Below, in pieces: positions 3,391 through 52,190 of a stretch of DNA of 64,000 nucleotides. Source of the DNA: Vitrella brassicaformis CCMP3155 (Eukaryota > Protista > Chromerida); assembly GCA_001179505.1 (NCBI GenBank), contig CDMY01000283.1, positions 1-64,000 on the forward strand. Direction: 5' to 3'. The notes beneath the pieces are model-generated. The model was not told the DNA's origin. It ran no database searches and saw only the letters and a list, made by a program, of their open reading frames with translations. Made by a program: the position numbers and the translations under genes. The stretch's first letter is position 1. The number at the start of each line of letters is the position of its first letter.

Positions 3391-6151
3391 ATGTCTAGCG
3401 GTTCAGGTGGTTCTCAGCAGAGCGGTCTGCCCCCCAGCCCGTCAGCAGCGAGTGCCATCTCCTCACCCAAGGCAGCATCCCGCGGCCGGCTCTCCCTCGC
3501 CGACCGCTCCCCACTCGCCCGGGGGCATACGACTGCCGGTAGAACAGAATCCAGTACAGTACGGGGAGATGGCCGCACAGCCACGGGGTCTTCCTCGGCC
3601 GCTGCTGCTGCTGCTGCGCCCGATGTGGGTGCTGCCAGTGCTGCGGGCATTGCAAGAGGACTTGCACCGGAGGACAGGGAGAGGGCTGAGAGGATCATGA
3701 AGCGACTGCAGGTACAAATGAGGACGCGTCGAGGGATGGATGGATGGATGGATGGATGGATGGATCTGTTGTTGTTGGGACTCGTTCTTGCTGCAGGAGC
3801 AGCAGGCGGCTGTGGCTCAGAGCCGCAGTGCGCAGCACATCATCCGGAGCGACTCTGAGCAGCGGCGGGGTGGGCGTGGGAATGATGTCTTTCACACCCC
3901 TCGTGGGGATGATGAGGATGAGGAGCCGTCGCAGTTCGCCCGTGTCAGGTTCCGCGACAGGACGAGCTACTTCTGCGACAGGAGTGCCATCCATCGCATG
4001 ACCATCTTCCTCGCATTCGCACTCGCCACCGTGGCCCTGCTGCACATGAAGGACTCATTCGGCTATGATATTCGCTGGTGCGTGCAGCGGGAGGGGCGGG
4101 GGGGAGAGGAGAGAGGTGGCGTGCACATGGCGTGTTGTGTGTCGTGGGTTGGTTGTCAGGGACCATTTGGTGCTGCTGTGGGCCGTCAACCGAGTGGTGG
4201 AGTACATCGAGATCACCGCCATGACCGCCCGAACCTTCTGGCTGTACACCTCTCACGGCCGCGACCCACCTGGCCCGCCACACGCACACTCCCAGCTGGC
4301 GCTGGGCAGACTGCTGATCCTGTTTCTGGAGCTGACGACGGCCGCCATGCTGGTGGTGGAGATACAGACACAGAAGTTCGGCAGCTATGTCATGTGCGGC
4401 TATGGGTGGCTGAACGGGTACGGGGAAGAGTGTGGGAGAATGGGGCCCACGCTGCTGGCTTTGCCTTTCTTTGGGTGGGTCTTTGTATGCAGTCGTCTTG
4501 TTAATGCGGCGCTGCACATCAACGTGATGAGTCAGTGTAAGTTCTACATCCCCGACACGCACCACCTCATCACAGCGATAGTCGTATGGATCGGGTAAGC
4601 TATTACATCAATACACACACACACACACACACACACACATGAACACACGGCTGCACTGGGGGATGGACGTCTGTCTGTGTGCATTTGCAGAGTGGCGGCG
4701 GCGATGAAGCTCGATGGTTGGCGCATCAGCTGGGTGGTCGTACTCGTGTAAGCCACACACCTTCCCACCCCTTCCCACCCCAAGCACAGGGCAACCCAGT
4801 GACATCCTCCCATTCCTTGTCTGCCTGCCTCAATTGCAGTTGGCAGAACTTCGCTGTCGGCGCATTTCTCGGCGAAGAACTGCTGCACGTAAGCAGCCAG
4901 CCATCACACACATCAACACACACGCGACCCCATCCACCTCTGCTCTTAACGGGCGCATTCAGATCTTGCAAGCCAAGTTGAGTCGGTTCAGCGGCGCGCC
5001 GGACAGCACGCCCGAACAGGCCAAGCAGCTGTTCTTCTCGCGGCTGTGTGTGGTGCTGGAGGAGCTGCCGTGGCTGGTGCTCATTGTGGCGGCCCTGTGG
5101 TGGCACATCATGCTGCTCATGTGGCTGCAGTTCCAGACCAACTTCTACAGGCTGGCCTATATGGCTTACCCCGTGTTGGGCTTCTTTTTCCTGGCGTTTG
5201 CCTACCAGTGCCTCGTCTACCGGTGCGGCGGCAAAGACACAGACAGAGACACAGCAATGAATGCGTGTGTGTGTCAGGATGCTCGGCCCCCGGGCGCCAG
5301 AGTACCTGACAAGAGGGCATTGAGACACTGTAGTCAATTGTGGACATGTCTCTCTCTCCCTCCCTCTCTCTCTGTGTATGTGTCTGTGTGTGTCTCCCAG
5401 CTGGACGGCCTTCGGCGTAAACCCTCGACGATTCCTCCCCTCCTTATACATCCGACCCAGATATGTCAAAGTGAGCAGCAGAAAGCCACAAATGGATCCT
5501 CTGCCACGAAATACATGTCACGTCTCTCTTGGCTATCTATCATTCAGAAGCACAACGCCTGTTACCTGAGGTACAGCGGCCCCATCCCCCGCCCCATGGC
5601 AGCAGTGGGCGACATCGAGAGCCAGACCCTGCCGCTGCCGGCCGGCAGGGAGGAGGAAGGGGCCGTGTCTAAGTCTGAAAGCCAAATATCGGAATCAGGT
5701 CCGGTGGGCGCGCAGCGACGGGAGTGGAGATGACCACCAAAGGATGTGTGTGTGTGTTGTGTCTCGGGCAGAGAATGGCGAGGACGCGTGTATCGTTTGT
5801 CGCGCGGCCAGGGCCAACGGGATCATAATGGAGTGCGGACACTCCGCATGTACGCCGGCCGGCCGATGGGACACACACGGGGGCTGCAGGCATCGTTTTT
5901 GTGTATTCGTATGTGTATGTGTATGTGTCAGGCTGCTACACTTGTGCGCGCCAGATATTCATCACTGACCAGAAATGCCATTACTGCAGACAGGTCAGTG
6001 GTGGCCACAATGCATTCATCCCATGCGGCCCTCATCCATCCACTCCACGTGTGTGGTGGTGTGTGTGGTGTCATGTGTGCAGCCGTCAACGTTCTTTCAC
6101 AAGATTGATCTGAATCCCGTGGCCCCCGGCATATACAGAGTCATCAAATAA
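3391..6151 (+). CDS. Multi-pass membrane protein with a C-terminal RING finger (probable E3 ubiquitin ligase)
   Basis: Low-complexity N-terminus and several hydrophobic helices. Spliced RING: CIVCRAARANGIIMECGHS...CYTCARQIFITDQKCHYCRQ. Ends ...PGIYRVIK* (TAA at 6149-6151). Confidence 0.8.
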
Positions 6152-8511: not shown

Positions 8512-13229
<4,718 letters not shown>

Positions 13230-42996: not shown

Positions 42997-43033
42997 CTGA
43001 CTTTATCGGGAGCATGTTTGTCCATGCTGTACA

Positions 43034-43161
43034 TGTACGTGTGGATGCAACGGTTTGCACTGAAATTCGAATCATTACTTTGTCAGCGAGAAACAGAGCA
43101 CCACGCTGACTCAAATGAGCAAAGGGGATTGATTCAACCCTGCAGGAATCACTTGCGAGCT
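43034..43161 (+). repeat. ~130-bp upstream segment duplicated at 49327-49456
   Basis: Shared blocks TGTACGTGTG, TTTGCACTGAAATTCGAATC, TTACTTTGTCA, GAGCACC, CTGACTC, AAAGGGGATTG, TTCAACCCT and TTGCGAGCT in the same order and with near-identical spacing. Confidence 0.9.
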
Positions 43162-43225
43162 TGGCATCAGACCCCAAGTGCCGTCAAACACACACACACA
43201 ACAAAAGACAGAGATATAGAGAAAG

Positions 43226-45717
43226 ATGGTGAAGCATCTGCCGAAAGAGAGAGCTCCTGCTGGGCGTGAGCCGAGAGAGCCTGTCCGGCTTCAAGGGCGT
43301 GTTCGCTTCCAAGACCTGATCAGTGAGACCAATCTCATTATGGTCCATGACGCAAGAGTGCATGCAAACGTGTGCTTGTTTGCTTGTGCGTGTGTGCATG
43401 CAGAGTTGTTCCCGGACGCGCCGCCGTTTCCGAATGCGAAGCCCAAGAAGCCAAAGTCGAGGCGGCGTCTGGAGGAAGCGGCGCGGGAGAGGCGCATGCG
43501 GAAGCTCCAGGAGGAGCTCCAGAGGAAGCACTTCCGTAAGCGCTTCGAGCGCACGAGAGCGCACTATGCTTGTCGCTCAACTCTCTTGTCCTGCACTGAC
43601 TGCAGTCCGTGACGACCCAGACGATCCCATCGACGAGCCCGACGAAGAAGAGCCACGGGGACAGCAGCCCCACTCTGCACGGTTGTGGTGGATGGACGGC
43701 ACCGAGGACGGCGCTGGGGCAGAGCAACTGCCGCCGCCGCCACTGTGGGTTGATGATGAGGGCGAGGGCGAGGGCGAGGGCGAGGGGGGAGAGGGCGACC
43801 AGGGCGAGGTAAGCAGTCAAAGCAGCCACATCATGGCACGTGTGCATACATGTGCCTGCCTGATGCAATGCAGGTCGGATCATCGGTGCCATGGTATGCG
43901 AGTCTGCCGCCCGACGACTTGGCGCTGGCGGAGCGCCTTGTCCGGGCGGGCGGCAAGTACCCCCGCAGCTTCATCTCAGACATCGGACACATCACCATCA
44001 ACGGGTACACCCGCCAGTCGCACTAATATGAGAGGGAAAGGGGGAATGAGAGGCGGTGCAAAGTCTCTGTCTGTTTGTGCGTGTGTGTGTTCAGCCATAA
44101 CATCGCTGCTTTGGGTGACGGGTCTGTGGTGGATAATGAGGTAGTGGATGCCGTGTTCACCCTGGCGGCCGAAAGACAGAGCCAGCTCAGACAGTCGGGC
44201 AGACTGTGAGCGACCTGCACACACCCTATCACTGCGTTCCGACCAACACGTATTCTGTGTGTCTGTGTGTGTGTGTTTGCGGCAGGTTGCCACGTGTCCG
44301 CTTCACCACCACAGACTTCTGGCAGAGCCTGGCGGGCCCCGACGACGGGTACAAATACAACTACGAAGCCGTCAAGAGCCACAACAACATCCAGGGCGTA
44401 AGTGAGCCGCCCAGTCACCCAACCACCCAGCTGCACCGAAGCCCTCGACGCATACAAACACAAACACGCCCATCGTCCGTATGTTTGTGTCATTCAGATA
44501 AGCGTGTTTGAGGTAGACTATCTGGCCGTGCCGATCTGTGATCATGGGCACTGGTCGCTAGGGTTTGTCGACGTGAGGGACTGACACACACACACACACA
44601 CACTCGCGAACGAACGAACGAACGAACGACGAGAAATGTGCCTGTCTGTGTGTGTGCCTTGTTGCCTGCAGGAGGAGACGGGTGGGGGTATTAGACACGG
44701 ACATGCTGCCCAGCGAGGATACCAGCTTCCAGTACACACACACACACACACACACATGTCCAGACAGAATGTGCCGAACGTGTCTGTCTGTCTGTGTATG
44801 TGTCTGTCTGTCTGTTGTGGTAATGCAGTTTCCTCCATTTCATGATTGACTATATGAAAGACGCCTACAGGGACTTGTTTCACCGCGAGATGCCATTTGG
44901 CGAGTTCAGACAGTGGTGCGAGGCAGATGATGAGGTACAGACACATACACACACAAGGCCTCCATGTCCCATTTCTTGTGTGTGTATGCAGTTGGATCTG
45001 CAGCAGCAGGCGTACGAGGAGGACAGCGGCATATGGATGCTGCTGTTCGGCTTCTGCTTAATGACTAGAACGTAAGCGCCCAAACAAGGAAAGGAGGCAG
45101 GCAGCCATGGGACGGGGGTCGACTTGCGTGAGTGAGCATGTGTGTGTGTGTGTGTGTGTGTGTATCAGTCCGTTTGCTAGTGTCCGCCCCCGCAGCTCGT
45201 TCCTCCGCCTCACCGGCGACTGGTCCCAGGACCAGACCGCCCTGATGGACATTGTCCGACGCAAAATGGTATGGATGGATGGACGGATGGCTGGATGGCT
45301 GGATGGTCGGTGCAATCGGTTTGGCTCTCTCGTATCAGGCTCTCTCGTATCAGGTACTTAGCCTATATCGCAAGCATCTCCCGGCTGAGGTTTTCGACAG
45401 TGCTGCTGATCGGGAGATGAGCGAGGGCGACGAGGGCGCGGTAGGCAACCAAAGCACTGTGCAAGGGTGGCGGGGTGGGTGCGTCAACGCGCCGGCCGTA
45501 TGTGTGTTGGTGCCCCCAGGTGGTATCTCCGACCGCGTCAATAGGCGACGAGGAGTTCTTCTCCCTCGACCCGCCCCCACCAGAGCAAAGTGACAGCACT
45601 GACGGCACCTTGCGGGGGGCAGAGCCACCCCAAACCAACGTCCAGGGCCATCCTTCCCGGGAGGGGGGGTTTCTGCATGGGTTCATGCAGATCGTGGAGG
45701 CCATCGCTGGAGGGTGA
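43226..45717 (+). CDS. Ulp1/SENP (peptidase C48) family protein with catalytic Cys replaced by Ser
   Basis: C48 profile: VVDNEVVDAVFTLAAER...PRVRFTTTDFWQSL; SVFEVDYLAVPICDHGHWSL (His); VGVLDT (Asp); QQQAYEEDSGIWML, where the family has QxNxxDCG; DIVRRKM|VL. Confidence 0.82.
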
Positions 45718-46626: not shown

Positions 46627-49110
46627 ATGGGGAAGCAAAGGAGACCGCTGTCCGCCACCACCACGAAAGCGAAAGAATCCCTGCTGACTCCGAGTCGTAA
46701 GTGCATCGCTCGTCAGCTCGATTCTCTCAGCCGGCGGCTGGAGCTTTATGCGGATCATGGCGCTGACGTCGTGATGCCCCTGCTTCGCGAACTCACAACC
46801 CTCTTGCACTTCGAAGGGCTCGGGGGAGGGCGCTGCCGAAGGGTGAGGAGTCGGCTGGCGAAACGCGCGAAGGCTTTCCACCAATACCTGTTCGCCATTC
46901 TGCATCTGGTCCGCGGGCAGGCAGGCAGGCAGGCAGCCAGAAGCAAGAAGGCGCGCCGCTTTGACTCTCTCTGGTGTCGTGTGTTTGCATCTATCTATCT
47001 CTTTTGCAGAGCTACAGTCCCGCGTGCCGTGAGGCTGCCGCCGTGGCAATCGCCAAGCTCGTCAAGCTCGGGTTGACCTTCGTCATCAAGCCGCAGACAT
47101 ACTATCTGGGCGAGCACCTCCTAGCGGCTCTGGAGAGTATCATCCCTGACGCCCCTCACCTGACCGCCGCTGATGAGGCCATCTACATCATCTTACTCGA
47201 AGTCATCGCCACGACGCGGGGCGGCATTGCCCCGTCGTGCTGCTACCAGGTCATCGGCGCAACCGCTGCGGACGGCACCGAATACCGCGACGTCATTCTC
47301 ACGCAGCACAAGGCTTTGTTGCGCCGCGCCGAGATCCTCCTGCAGAGCTGCGATGACCTGAGGCAGCACAGCGTCCTCTTTCTTCTGTCCTTCTACAAGC
47401 CTCTCGCGCCGCCCTCCTGCTCCGTTGGCTGCTGGATGCGTCTGATGGGTGTGGCTGGATGCCGGCTCTGCGTGTTTGTTTCACTGTGTGGACCTGGTGC
47501 TCTCTCTGTGCAGGTGTGGCCATCGGTGTCAGCCTGCGGCAGCCGGCTCCACACGAGCTCGACGTGGCCGACTCGATGCTCAGGACCGCTGACGTCAACA
47601 TCAGCGGCGCCATCCGTGCAGGTGCGCGAAGTGAGGCCACACGCGGATGTGGCCTGACTGACCTGCCCGCCATCCAGTGTGTGTGTGTGTGTGTTGGTGT
47701 TGGTGTTGGTGTTGGTGTATGTGTTTGGTCGACTGACTGTCAGGCCGCGAGGTGGAGGTGTTTGCTGCAATCGAGGAGTACCTGGCCCCCTGTGTGGGCC
47801 CGCTGGTGATGGTGCTCACGTGGAGCGGCGATGTGGCGCTGAAGCGGCGCGCGATGAGCCTTATCGGCTGGATCTTCTATTTCACCTACAAGCCGTGCAT
47901 CGAGGGATGCGCCCCTTCGTCCGTCCAGGCGGAGGTCGATAAAGGTACGTCTGGAGAGGGAAAAGACGAGAGATGTGTTCTGCTCACACTCTGTGATGTG
48001 TGTGGTCGCTCAGTGTTGCGCCAGCCGGTCCGTGTGTTGTCGGCGGATCCCTTGGCGCTCAATACCATGGCCATGCTGCTGGGTGACACACACGCCGGCG
48101 GAGACGACGTCATCTCCAACATGCACGTGCCCCTGTACATCGCCAATCACCTGTCAGGTAGGTCCTCAACCCCCACACACACCCGACGCACAGGCAACCA
48201 CAACCTTGGTGGCTCTGTGCGTTGTCGACCTTCAGATCCGTCCCTCCACGAGGGCGCAGAAGGGCACTTGAATGCCCTCATCGAGGCTGGCTGGGTGCGT
48301 GCCATCGTCGGGCTCATCCGCGACGACCGGCTGCTGTCGATCGAGGCCTTCGTCAAGTACACCCTGCCGGGCTGCATTTACGCACTGCACAACATGGCTC
48401 AGTGCGACGAACAGGTGGATGGGGAAGTGGTGAGGCAGCAAGGGCAGGGCATCCACCAGTGCTGCTGTGTTTGTGTCTGCAGGTGTTGTGTGAGACGTCC
48501 GGTGTGTCCGTCGTGGGTGCGGTATGTGAGCTGCTCGTCAAGCACGCCCGCGGCGACATCGACATGATCGAGGAGAGCGACATGCAGAACCCTGAGTCGG
48601 TCATCAATGCCATATTGTGGCTCATCAACGAATTCGTGCCGTAAGGACATACACACACCAAAGACGCACACATTTCGACGCACGTGTGTGCGCGTGTGCG
48701 TGCATTTTTGCATAGGTACGGCGAGCGGCAGATTGACCAGGGGAAGCTCAGTACCAACGTGCCTCGGGTTCTGGTCCTCCAGGTACGCTCCCGCACAACT
48801 GGACATGCACTGATATCTCCCTGGACGCGTGACGCCTGTGTGTTCGTCTCTTAGCTGCCGTCGATCAAGGAGCTCATGACCATGCCGCGTGGCCTGCAAA
48901 GGCTGCCCAGAGAGGTGATATACACAGCCGGCCACACAAGCATGATCGCGTATTGCAGTCGGGACAGCAGTGTTGTGTGCTTGTGAGTGGATGCAGGTGT
49001 TTCAGCAGCTGGATTGGCTTTACGCTGCGTCCCGCGAGGAGCAGCACATGCGGTGTCGAGCTGAGGAAATCGCACAGGCATTCGCCCTCTGGCCTGCTGC
49101 AGGCGAGTGA
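46627..49110 (+). CDS. ARM/HEAT-like repeat protein, tandem paralog A
   Basis: Same exon structure and motifs as paralogs B-D (QLDSLSRRL, YRDVILTQHKALLRRAE, FAAIEEYLAP, LIEAGWVRAIVGLIRDDRLL, CELLVKHARGDID, QQLDWLY). The GWVPAIV segment resembles importin-alpha ARM repeats. Confidence 0.75.
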
Positions 49111-49326
49111 GCCAGTGACGTCGACCGTCGATGGTGTGTCGGAGGGAAGAGGGCCGCAGCAGGCGATTTACGTACGTACATGTCTTCCGTATACGTATAC
49201 ATTTGTATATTTGTATATTTGTGTGTACACATCTCAGTATGTATATGTACATGTGTGTGTACGTTGACTCACTTCGTTTGTCGTTTTGGTGCCGGTCGGT
49301 GGTGATCTGCGGATGTGTACTTGACT

Positions 49327-49456
49327 TGTACGTGTGAATGCGACAATTTGCACTGAAATTCGAATCGTTACTTTGTCAACGAGACCTGGAGCACCGCACT
49401 GACTCCTAAAACAAGGAAAGGGGATTGGTTCAACCCTCACAAGAAATTTGCGAGCT
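49327..49456 (+). promoter_or_regulatory. Upstream region of ARM paralog B, homologous to 43034-43161
   Basis: Lies 55-185 bp upstream of the ATG at 49511. Aligns by eye with the region upstream of the Ulp1-like gene. Confidence 0.7.
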
Positions 49457-49510: not shown

Positions 49511-52190
49511 ATGACGGCCTCGTTGTCGAGTCAGCTGGATTCTCTCAGCCAGCGGCTGCATGAGATATCGCCAACCGCTGACCGTGAGGCGCTGATGCCG
49601 CTCCTGGAAGATCTCGTTTCCAACCTCCACTTTGACAAGAACACTGCCGCTGGGCAGCAGAAGGCCACCAGGCTAAGGAAGCTGCTGCCGCCGCTCGCCA
49701 AGGGCGCGAATTCGCCGCATCAACCACTCCTCGCCATGATCCAGGTACTTTTGTGTCGTGAGGGCATGTGGCCAATGTGAAGCGCATGCACCTCGTGTTT
49801 GTGTTTGTGCTGTCTGCAGAGTGCGAGGAGCCGTCGGTGCCGTCGTTGGGCGACCATCGCCTTCTCGAAGCTGCTCCAGGCGGGCTACCCCTTCTGCTTC
49901 AGATCTGCGCAGCCAGATCTGGTCAAGCAGCTGCTCGACAACATGGCGCTGCTCCTCCCCACGGATGCGTCAGCCAGCACTGATATTGACAACGCCGTCT
50001 ATGCCATCCTGCTCGAGGTGATCGCGGTGTATGCGGGCGGAGTGCCTGCGTCCTTCGTGGGCATCGAGGAGCGGCGGTCACCTGTGGACTACCGCGAGAT
50101 CATCGTCACCAAGCACGAGGCGTTCCTGCACCGTGCCGAGTCCATCCTGCGCCACGCACCGCGTCTGTATGGACTCGGCTACGGAGTACTCTTCCTCATC
50201 CATTTCTACCAGCCATTGGCTCCCGACTCGTGCGCCGTCCTGTCGTGGATGCGGCTGGTGAGCCTGGCCATTGACATCACCATAGACGGCTCGGCCGCCC
50301 GCTATGCTCATTACGATACTTTCTTGCTGGACCGGCTGCGATGGGATGTAAATGGGAACGTCGTGCACTCAGTGGAGAACGGTGAGTGGACTCAAATGAT
50401 ATACACATATGTGTATGTGTTGCACACGTCTGTCAGGTCGCGATGCCGAGCTGTTTGCGGCGATTGAGGAGCATCTGGTGCCGCGTGTCGGTCGCCTCGT
50501 CGAGGTCATGACGACCAGCAACGACGACAACACCAGGCGGCTGGCGATGAGCATGATCGGGTCCATTTTCTACCTTGCGCACGCGTCGTATATCAAACAC
50601 TACCCCGACCCATTCATTCAGTCCCGTGTCGACGAAGGTGAGAAGCCATCACGCCTTTGACGCACCTTGCACCATGAAGCTGTCTCCCTGTGTGTGCCCC
50701 TGTCTGTGATTCAGTGCTGAGTGAGCCTGTTCGTGTGTTGCTGGCGCATCCATGCGCCCTCAAGACCATGGCATCACTGCTCAAGACGGCCGGCACTGCC
50801 GTGGACAGCCGAGATAAGTTGACACGCAACCAGCAGATCGAGTTCAACATCATGGAGCCCAACTTCGTCGCGTTGCATCTATCAGGTGGGCCGGCAACCC
50901 ACACACACGGACACACAGACGAATGATGGATGAATGGGTCTGTGTGTGTTGACGCTTCATTCAGATCCGTCTCTCAACAAGCACGCCAGAGAGCATGTGC
51001 ACGCCCTCATCGAGGCCGGCTGGGTGCCCGCCATCGTCACGCTCATGGGCGACGACCGGCTGCTCAAGATTGAGAGATTCGCCGACATTGGTCTGCCGGG
51101 CTGCCTGAACTCTCTGTACAAAATGGCGCAGCGCGACGAAAGAGTTGGCGGTGGCTGAATGGATGAGTGAATGAGGCCCTCACTCGGTGTGTGGATGGAT
51201 GGATGTGTGCAGGTAGCGTGCGACAAGACGGTTGCGTCGGTTTGCTGTGACCTGTTGGCCAAACACGCCCGTGGCGACATCGACATAGCGATCGAGGACG
51301 AAGTCAACATCACGAACTCGGCCGTCAACACGATCATGTCCATCATCAGCGAGTTTGTCGCGTAACCAACTCACACACACACATACACACACGCCATGAC
51401 GCGGCTCTTATGTGCCTCTGTTTATCCATCCGTGCAGCTATGGCGACCGTCAGGTGGAGCGAGGCAAAATCGCCACCAACGTCTTCCGCATCTACGTCTT
51501 CAAGGTAAGCCCCCCCCCCNNNNNNNNNNNNNNNNNNNNNNNNNNNNNNNNNNNNNNNNNNNNNNNNNNNNNNNNNNNNNNNNNNNNNNNNNNNNNNNNN
51601 NNNNNNNNNNNNNNNNNNNNNNNNNNNNNNNNNNNNNNNNNNNNNNNNNNNNNNNNNNNNNNNNNNNNNNNNNNNNNNNNNNNNNNNNNNNNNNNNNNNN
51701 NNNNNNNNNNNNNNNNNNNNNNNNNNNNNNNNNNNNNNNNNNNNNNNNNNNNNNNNNNNNNNNNNNNNNNNNNNNNNNNNNNNNNNNNNNNNNNNNNNNN
51801 NNNNNNNNNNNNNNNNNNNCCCACACACAGACACCCATTATGCCTACCTGCTTGCATGTGTGTGCGCGTCTGTGGTGTGTCGTGTGTCACACACACATGA
51901 CTCCATCCAGCTGCCGTCGGTCAAGGAGCTCATGGCCATGCCACGCGAGGGAAACAAACTACCCAAGAAGGTGAGTCAGATACACGCACTGCACTGCATC
52001 CACCCAGACAGATAAATCCACGGTATGCCCATGTGTGCGTTTGCGCGTGTGGTGCGCGTGTGCACAGATACGTGACCAGTTGGATTGGCTGTACGAGACC
52101 CCCAGCAGATTCCACGCGGGGCAGCAGATGCGCCGCAGCATAGACGAGCTCATGGCGGCGCGCGCCACCGGCCTCGGTCGGGCGGGATAG
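49511..52190 (+). CDS. ARM/HEAT-like repeat protein, tandem paralog B (interrupted by an assembly gap)
   Basis: MTASLSSQLDSLSQRLHEISPTADREALMPLL...; ELFAAIEEHLVPRVGRLVEVMTTS; ALIEAGWVPAIVTLMGDDRLL; last exon IRDQLDWLYETPSRF...GLGRAG*. Confidence 0.75.
51520..51819. other. Assembly gap (300 N)
   Basis: Run of N inside an intron of ARM paralog B, after a poly-C tract. Confidence 1.

Follow-up and report, generated by a model that had tools for sequence, protein, structure and literature searches.

SERA5 of Plasmodium is a papain-like, natural Cys-to-Ser pseudo-protease, of use here as an analogy only. Among Ulp1/SENP proteases the same exchange is familiar as a laboratory mutation, as in Ulp1 C580S, which serves as a SUMO-binding reagent (PMC3216068). 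The part of the review PMC10919355 available to us lists pseudo-enzymes in the USP and JAMM families and names no natural pseudo-SENP or pseudo-Ulp, nor was one found in the literature searched. Here we describe a gene with a Peptidase_C48 (Ulp1/SENP) domain from Vitrella brassicaformis CCMP3155, in the group of the closest photosynthetic relatives of apicomplexan parasites. The gene occupies positions 43226-45717 (+ strand) of contig CDMY01000283.1 in assembly GCA_001179505.1, in 13 exons; the window that we analyzed comprises the first 64,000 nucleotides of this contig. In the frame-preserving gene model the nucleophilic Cys is replaced by Ser, and a first reading, made from the sequence only, had taken the product for a natural SUMO trap. 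We lean instead toward the view that the locus is a transcribed, recently disabled, lineage-specific Ser-variant gene, and neither a working protease nor a SUMO trap.

Results

Family and active site

Membership in the Peptidase_C48 family is solid. Profile PF02902 recognized a paralogous protein (P0001, described below) at E = 1.8e-11 (44.7 bits, the cut-off being 20.7), and this protein is identical to the window gene in exons 7, 8 and 10. The product of window exons 1-7 (P0006) also matched (20.9 bits, E = 3.5e-4), as did exon 7, which carries the catalytic His, alone (20.8 bits, E = 3.8e-4). When single exons were searched against Pfam, none but this His exon scored, and the Gln/Ser exon by itself had no match in the PDB.

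In a phmmer search of the PDB with the paralogue domain, SENP1 and SENP2 chains were the best matches (E = 1e-5 to 4e-5). The top of the list was taken by crystal constructs of SENP with an engineered Cys-to-Ser or Cys-to-Ala exchange, the Ser constructs because the 'dsg' of the query pairs with their 'dsg'. The ESM Atlas predicted model of P0001 superposes on C48/SENP2 clusters with template-modeling (TM) scores of 0.73-0.77 over residues 45-269; judged from this paralogue model, the domain would have the CE-clan Ulp fold.

In the alignment with SENP1 and SENP2, HWSL stands against HWCL or HWSL, VGVLDT against ITYYDS, QQ against QQ, and EEDSG against GSD(C)G. Of the catalytic residues, His and Asp are conserved, as is the oxyanion Gln, at the HW, YDS and QQ positions, though in the frame-preserving model only, where the spacings are 17 residues from His to Asp and 6 from Gln to Ser. 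The nucleophile of the D-C-G motif is absent, D-S-G (AGC, 45025-27) standing in its place. For the N-terminal half, GDGSVVDNEVVD pairs with NHLNWLNDEIIN, which sets Val against the first tunnel Trp (of NWLND); this last alignment is weak (E = 0.06), yet it falls in one register across all SENP1 chains. The second tunnel Trp, that of HW, is kept, which leaves one of the two Trp of the Gly-Gly tunnel. The sequence-only reading had named the family, the His (CAC, 44549-44551), the Asp of VLDT, the oxyanion Gln, the Ser codon at the nucleophile position and the loss of the WLND Trp in GSVVDNE (Val, 44126-28), and the profile matches and the SENP1/SENP2 alignment bear it out on each of these.

The Ser codon is genuine and not an assembly error. 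At 45025-27 no alternative letter occurs in the DNA contigs of two studies (runs X3 and X1) or in a spliced contig of a third (run X10). AGC stands in the paralogue too, and since its exon 10 is identical to that of the window at 80 of 80 positions, the contigs of these three runs cannot separate the copies at this codon. The window copy itself is vouched for by a copy-specific transcript (L003, see below), which carries GAGGAGGACAGCG, that is, AGC. An artefact hiding a true TGC can thus be dismissed for practical purposes, with no other letter in the contigs of three studies and AGC in both L003 and the paralogue; the base that the sequence-only reading had marked for checking holds.

An apparent lesion at the donor of intron 7

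The gene model was assembled by eye and script, and then compared with spliced contigs. If exon 7 is read to the nearest canonical donor (GT, 44573-74) and joined to exon 8 from the AG at 44671, the two exons are out of phase by one base. The sole junction that keeps both the frame and the His-Asp spacing of the family is 44577|44672, and its donor is GG (44578-79). Every other intron of the gene is GT-AG, and GG-AG introns are extremely rare in general. Exon 7 of the public annotation accordingly stops at 44572, and that of the frame-preserving model, which encodes a protein of 503 residues, at 44577.

At the same donor the paralogue reads GTGAG|GTACTG, against GTGAG|GGACTG in the window; because the paralogue has GT here, we read the difference as a T>G change at 44579 of the window. 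The paralogue protein runs in frame through this junction, as GFVDVRRRRVGVLDT / VDVRRRRVGVLDT. In the window copy, a cryptic donor (GTGAG) lies 5 nt upstream of the GG; its use shifts the frame and leads to a stop (TGA, 44847-49) in exon 9. Two other junctions were considered and rejected: GT44573 with AG44633 is in frame but inserts 13 residues from a (TG)n/pyrimidine tract, and with a GA donor at 44575 the spacing from His to Asp becomes 16. We prefer 44577|44672 because it matches both the paralogue protein and the 17-residue spacing of the family.

The public annotation splits the gene in two, CEL99551.1 (P0006, 313 residues) and CEL99552.1 (P0002, 174 residues, start at 44890), and neither contains a complete C48 domain. 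CEL99551.1 uses the upstream GT and ends after the His, with the tail EETGGGIRHGHAAQRGYQLPFPPFHD / GFVDEETGGGIRHGHAAQRGYQLPFPPFHD and the stop at 44847-49. The Vitrella annotation was produced by Augustus with RNA-seq intron hints (PMC4501334), a pipeline that would not see a GG-AG junction. With canonical splicing, the Asp, Gln and Ser boxes would fall out of frame and no single uninterrupted frame would span the domain. The sequence-only reading had placed all the domain residues in one frame; the exon 7/8 junction allows this only with the GG donor.

Neither spliced form of intron 7 was found in a pattern search of metagenome contigs of the Joint Genome Institute (JGI), and a word search of short transcript-derived open reading frames over exons 4-7 returned only one fragment, P0009.

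Transcription of the gene

Introns 1-6, 9, 11 and 12 are seen spliced in contigs of run X10, which behave like RNA, and intron 12 also in run X15; the X10 contigs place the transcript start at or 5' of 43191. The 3' half is covered by L003, a 1225-nt transcript contig of JGI data set 3300017148 that begins at 44852, in exon 9. It matches the window at 100% over exons 9-12; from exon 13 through the 3' untranslated region (3'UTR) as far as 46379, 860 of 861 bases agree. It agrees with the window-specific sites at 100%, which makes it specific to the window copy and not the paralogue. L003 sets intron 10 at 45072-45168 and confirms introns 9, 11 and 12. RNA support thus extends to 10 of the 12 introns; the two without it are introns 7 and 8, where a repeat mask covers 44572-44636. 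The introns are short and have many CA/GT repeats.

These transcripts also corrected the start of exon 11 as first modeled, since they use 45169 (exon 12 starting at 45339). Silence of the gene, which the sequence-only reading had named as evidence against itself, is not what we found: the gene is transcribed and spliced.

The paralogous locus and further copies

The paralogue (locus L001) lies on contig CDMY01000690.1, where positions 10467-12209 are 92-94% identical to the window, introns included. Its copy A spans window positions 44135-45599 only. Immediately after it comes a copy B (window 44584-44924), whose exon 8 has lost 20 nt, and a third fragment of 284 nt (window 44135-44432; L001 4530-4813) lies 6 kb upstream. 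No homology to the sequence upstream of window position 44135 was found in the paralogous contig by tblastn, and the paralogous protein lacks the first 45-60 residues of the structural domain as well as the strand that corresponds to WLND.

This protein, CEM30219.1 (P0001; L001 10001-12853), is a chimeric model. Its N-terminal exons are rich in Arg and Ser, and its tail, which stems from copy B, is frame-shifted: splicing runs from a donor within exon 13 into 9-10 nt of the duplicate exon 8 and then into the duplicate exon 9 in another frame. The resulting junction, PEQ|RGDG, is present as a loose end in an RNA-like X10 contig, so the P0001 locus is transcribed. We had considered this X10 loose end, at 45590 (AGGAGACGG), as a back-splice of the window gene; this was rejected once it proved to be the PEQ|RGDG exon junction of the paralogue.

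The 284-nt fragment forms part of P0009 (113 residues, L001 4531-5490), an annotated chimera in which a duplicate of exon 6 continues into the intron and is joined to a CCHC knuckle (CWWCHQRGHKMSRC); in UniRef it bears the name of a CCHC-type domain protein.

In the X3 and X1 DNA contigs, foreign sequence (…GAATTCGTCATCTGGTACTGATACACACAC) is joined at window position 44937, in the CA repeat of intron 9, and k-mer depth, which is not copy number, is 3-4 fold over 44860-45124. Together these hint at one more partial copy, elsewhere in the genome, that includes the Ser exon. The paralogous locus is a fragmentary, truncated and rearranged duplicate, and the window copy looks like its parent.

Relatives and selection

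No relatives outside Vitrella turned up in a scan of 1.84 billion protein representatives with the Gln/Ser exons, an 80-residue query of which 61 residues were real; distant orthologues could have escaped a query of this size. The scan returned P0001 and P0002 only, plus repeat artefacts from translated intron. Word-index searches likewise gave Vitrella proteins only, and JGI metagenome contigs held no relative.

Over exons 7-13, the window and copy A of L001 differ at 4 sites (dS, the synonymous divergence, 0.016; dN, the nonsynonymous, 0.004), too few to test. Because these 3' halves are nearly identical (98-100%), the Ser shared by the two copies counts as one event. For the Ser in relatives to which the sequence-only reading had looked, the paralogue therefore does share it, but in a near-identical 3' half, and no orthologues were found.

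Exons 5b and 6 behave differently. Within window 44135-44440 they have diverged by 12-15% from both L001 copies (10467-10765 and 4530-4813), many of the changes being synonymous. Against copy A, 25 of 183 sites differ (dS 0.40, dN 0.093, omega about 0.23), a synonymous excess with p about 0.001-0.004. Intron 5 and the first part of intron 6 show just 6 differences in 151 sites (95-100% identity), against the 25 of 183 in the exons (Fisher p = 0.002). The exons thus look older than the intron they flank, and patchy gene conversion is our guess for this contrast.

Gene structure and surroundings

The exons of the frame-preserving model and the lesion are collected in Table 1.

Table 1. Exons of the C48-domain gene and the altered splice site, in window coordinates
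Feature	Position	Strand	Evidence and remarks
Exon 1, ATG start	43226..43322	+	X10 spliced contig 43191-43322 joined to 43404; same start as CEL99551.1
Exon 2, basic, Lys/Arg-rich	43404..43535	+	X10 GT-AG joints 43322>43404 and 43535>43606
Exon 3, acidic low-complexity, (GAGGGC)n repeat	43606..43808	+	X10; translation
Exon 4, N-terminal part of structural Ulp domain	43874..44004	+	X10 joint 44004>44095; SENP1 alignment
Exon 5, GSVVDNE in place of NWLND	44095..44205	+	Alignment; X10; tunnel Trp position is Val codon 44126-28; paralogue homology starts at 44135
Exon 6	44286..44397	+	X10, joint 44397>44498
Exon 7, His box, His codon 44549-51	44498..44577	+	PF02902 match; SENP alignment; P0006 sequence; paralogue protein P0001 (VDVRRRRVGVLD)
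Lesion, in-frame donor of intron 7, GG	44578..44579	+	Alignment with paralogue (GT); donor table
Exon 8, Asp box VLDT, Asp codon 44694-96	44672..44731	+	Out of frame in annotated model
Exon 9	44829..44934	+	Shifted-frame TGA 44847-49 ends CEL99551.1; ATG of CEL99552.1 at 44890
Exon 10, QQQAYEEDSG; Gln 45007-09, Ser AGC 45025-27	44992..45071	+	RNA; DNA; joint 44934>44992
Exon 11	45169..45268	+	L003 spliced alignment; P0002 and P0008 sequences
Exon 12	45339..45440	+	X10 and L003 joints; acceptor inside first copy of 15-nt tandem duplication
Exon 13 and stop codon; 3'UTR to at least 46379	45520..45717	+	Joint 45440>45520 in X10 and X15; L003

The acceptor of intron 11 lies in a 15-nt tandem duplication (GGCTCTCTCGTATCA x2) at window 45323-45352. 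Transcripts splice to the first unit, so that the protein gains ALSYQ; a single unit is present in the paralogue and in one contig of run X1.

The neighbors of the gene are ordinary. No inverted repeats of at least 45 nt, terminal repeats or transposase domain were found around it, and a search for structured RNA in the conserved intron 5 and the rest of the gene gave sub-threshold matches only, on CA/TG repeats. An element of 82-135 nt, 81-84% identical, occurs at window 43031-43161 and 49324-49456, in each case 55-65 nt 5' of a start codon, that of the C48 gene and that of a gene starting near 49511, both on the + strand; it could be a shared promoter or 5'UTR element or a small dispersed repeat. 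Direct repeats at 48231-48411 and 50960-51140 consist of a 122-nt (78%) and a 48-nt (81%) pair, and their identical spacing of 2729 nt suggests that the downstream genes lie in a tandem duplication that has since diverged.

Discussion

The explanation that we favor would run as follows. The window copy would be the parent gene in a small group of strongly diverged Ulp1/SENP (Peptidase_C48) genes, restricted to Vitrella, that have Ser in place of the nucleophilic Cys. The in-frame 5' splice site of intron 7, between the His and Asp exons, would then have mutated from GT to GG, and splicing would resort to the GTGAG donor located 5 nt upstream. The frame would shift after ...HWSLGFVD and run into the stop in exon 9, so that the mRNA, which is made and spliced, would encode a 313-residue product without the Asp, Gln and Ser, as in the public annotation. 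We favor a recently disabled gene because the in-frame donor is destroyed, a strong cryptic donor lies just upstream of it and the sister locus is fragmentary. Of the three options listed in the sequence-only reading, that of a decaying duplicate fits best as regards decay, whereas the window copy looks like the parent and not the duplicate.

Several points weigh against this explanation. The G at 44579 is known from the assembly, the stretch 44572-44636 having been repeat-masked in the contig comparison, and an assembly error at this base would restore a normal gene. We infer use of the cryptic donor, the RNA joints covering introns other than 7, and from this donor choice in turn the loss of function. 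Both halves of the gene are transcribed, as X10 and L003 attest. The omega of about 0.23 in exons 5b-6 argues that the family would long have evolved as a working, constrained coding gene, and the intact His, Asp, Gln and D-x-G on a very long branch argue for recent or continuing constraint. Exons 8-13 are without further lesions, though at 1.6% synonymous divergence none would be expected. The intact residues, the purifying selection in the past and the continuing transcription speak for either a recent inactivation or some remaining use.

The alternative that survives best, although we regard it as rather unlikely, is a working, non-catalytic Ulp-like reader or trap for SUMO or another ubiquitin-like modifier (UBL). 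The full 503 residues would then be made, whether through a true T at 44579 or through tolerance of the GG donor, and the Ser-for-Cys protein would bind its modifier without cleaving it, as does Ulp1 C580S, whose tight binding of SUMO conjugates, invoked by the sequence-only reading, is documented (PMC3216068). The Ser sits exactly at the nucleophile position, and in both loci, among conserved His, Asp and Gln; the gene is transcribed and spliced, and exons 5b-6 bear the mark of past purifying selection. Against this, the in-frame donor is GG in the assembly, a very rare class, and Val replaces one of the two Trp that clamp the Gly-Gly tail. No Ser orthologue was found that would speak for selection on the Ser itself, and the Ser of the two copies amounts to one event. 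The headline of the sequence-only reading, a natural SUMO trap, gained no positive support, and canonical splicing of the window copy as assembled cannot yield the whole domain. That a full-length natural Cys-to-Ser protein of the Ulp/SENP fold, from this locus or from the sister copy, acts as a selected, non-cleaving SUMO/UBL reader or regulator is a minority prospect in our judgment.

It is more doubtful still that the family has its functional gene in the paralogue CEM30219.1 on CDMY01000690.1, or in a third, unassembled copy, with the window copy a redundant relic. In the paralogue the donor is the canonical GT and the frame stays open from His through Asp and Gln to Ser; it matches PF02902 at E = 1.8e-11, and its PEQ|RGDG splice in the X10 contig attests to transcription, while the k-mer depth and the foreign junctions at 44937 hint at a further copy. 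However, P0001 is without everything upstream of 44135, and toward both termini it consists of low-complexity sequence or of frame-shifted sequence from the duplicate.

An active Ser-His-Asp hydrolase with Ser as the nucleophile in a CE-clan fold is very improbable: His, Asp and oxyanion Gln are intact and Cys/Ser interchange is known in other protease clans, but we know of no Ser enzyme in the CE clan, the frame break at intron 7 applies here too, and engineered Cys-to-Ser mutants of Ulp1/SENP are inactive (PMC3216068).

Under the favored reading of a disabled gene, CEL99551.1 and CEL99552.1 are halves of one C48 gene split by a splice-site lesion, and their annotation should be corrected. 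A pattern of catalytic residues should never be taken from a gene model that crosses a non-canonical junction without marking it. If a protein were nevertheless made and selected, evolution would have reached the same Cys-to-Ser 'trap' that was engineered in Ulp1/SENP; it would be a pseudo-enzyme in a protease family without one in the searched literature, and could be the first natural pseudo-SENP reported.

Comparison with known systems

Genes with a Ulp1 domain that were spread by duplication or by transposons, such as the plant C48 genes linked to hAT and MULE elements, resemble the Vitrella family in being lineage-specific, multi-copy and rich in fragments. A hAT-C48 fusion cluster is a predicted structural neighbor in the Atlas, and the paralogous locus has a fragment fused to a CCHC knuckle. 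The window gene differs from these in its 12 introns and ordinary neighbors, and no transposase, terminal or inverted repeats were found at it. With pseudo-deubiquitinases and other natural pseudo-proteases it shares a protease fold that has lost its nucleophile; elsewhere, according to the part of the review available to us, such proteins act as scaffolds or binders (PMC10919355).

The engineered traps Ulp1 C580S, SENP1 C603S and SENP2 C548S have the same residue change at the same position. They are, however, laboratory mutants of optimal SUMO binders with both Trp intact, whereas in Vitrella the change is natural and one Trp is lost; expression of the full domain from the window copy is, moreover, doubtful. 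From SENP1 and SENP2 themselves (PDB 2g4d, 2iy0, 2io0) the Vitrella gene is set apart by a similarity of about 27-29 bits, by Ser for Cys and Val for the first tunnel Trp, by a long, basic and acidic N-terminal region, and by a frame that is broken in the window between His and Asp. It nonetheless has the HW motif, and its His, Asp, Gln and nucleophile position follow each other in the same order and at the same distances as in SENP1 and SENP2; the Atlas structure search would place the predicted fold with the SENP2 cluster (TM 0.75).

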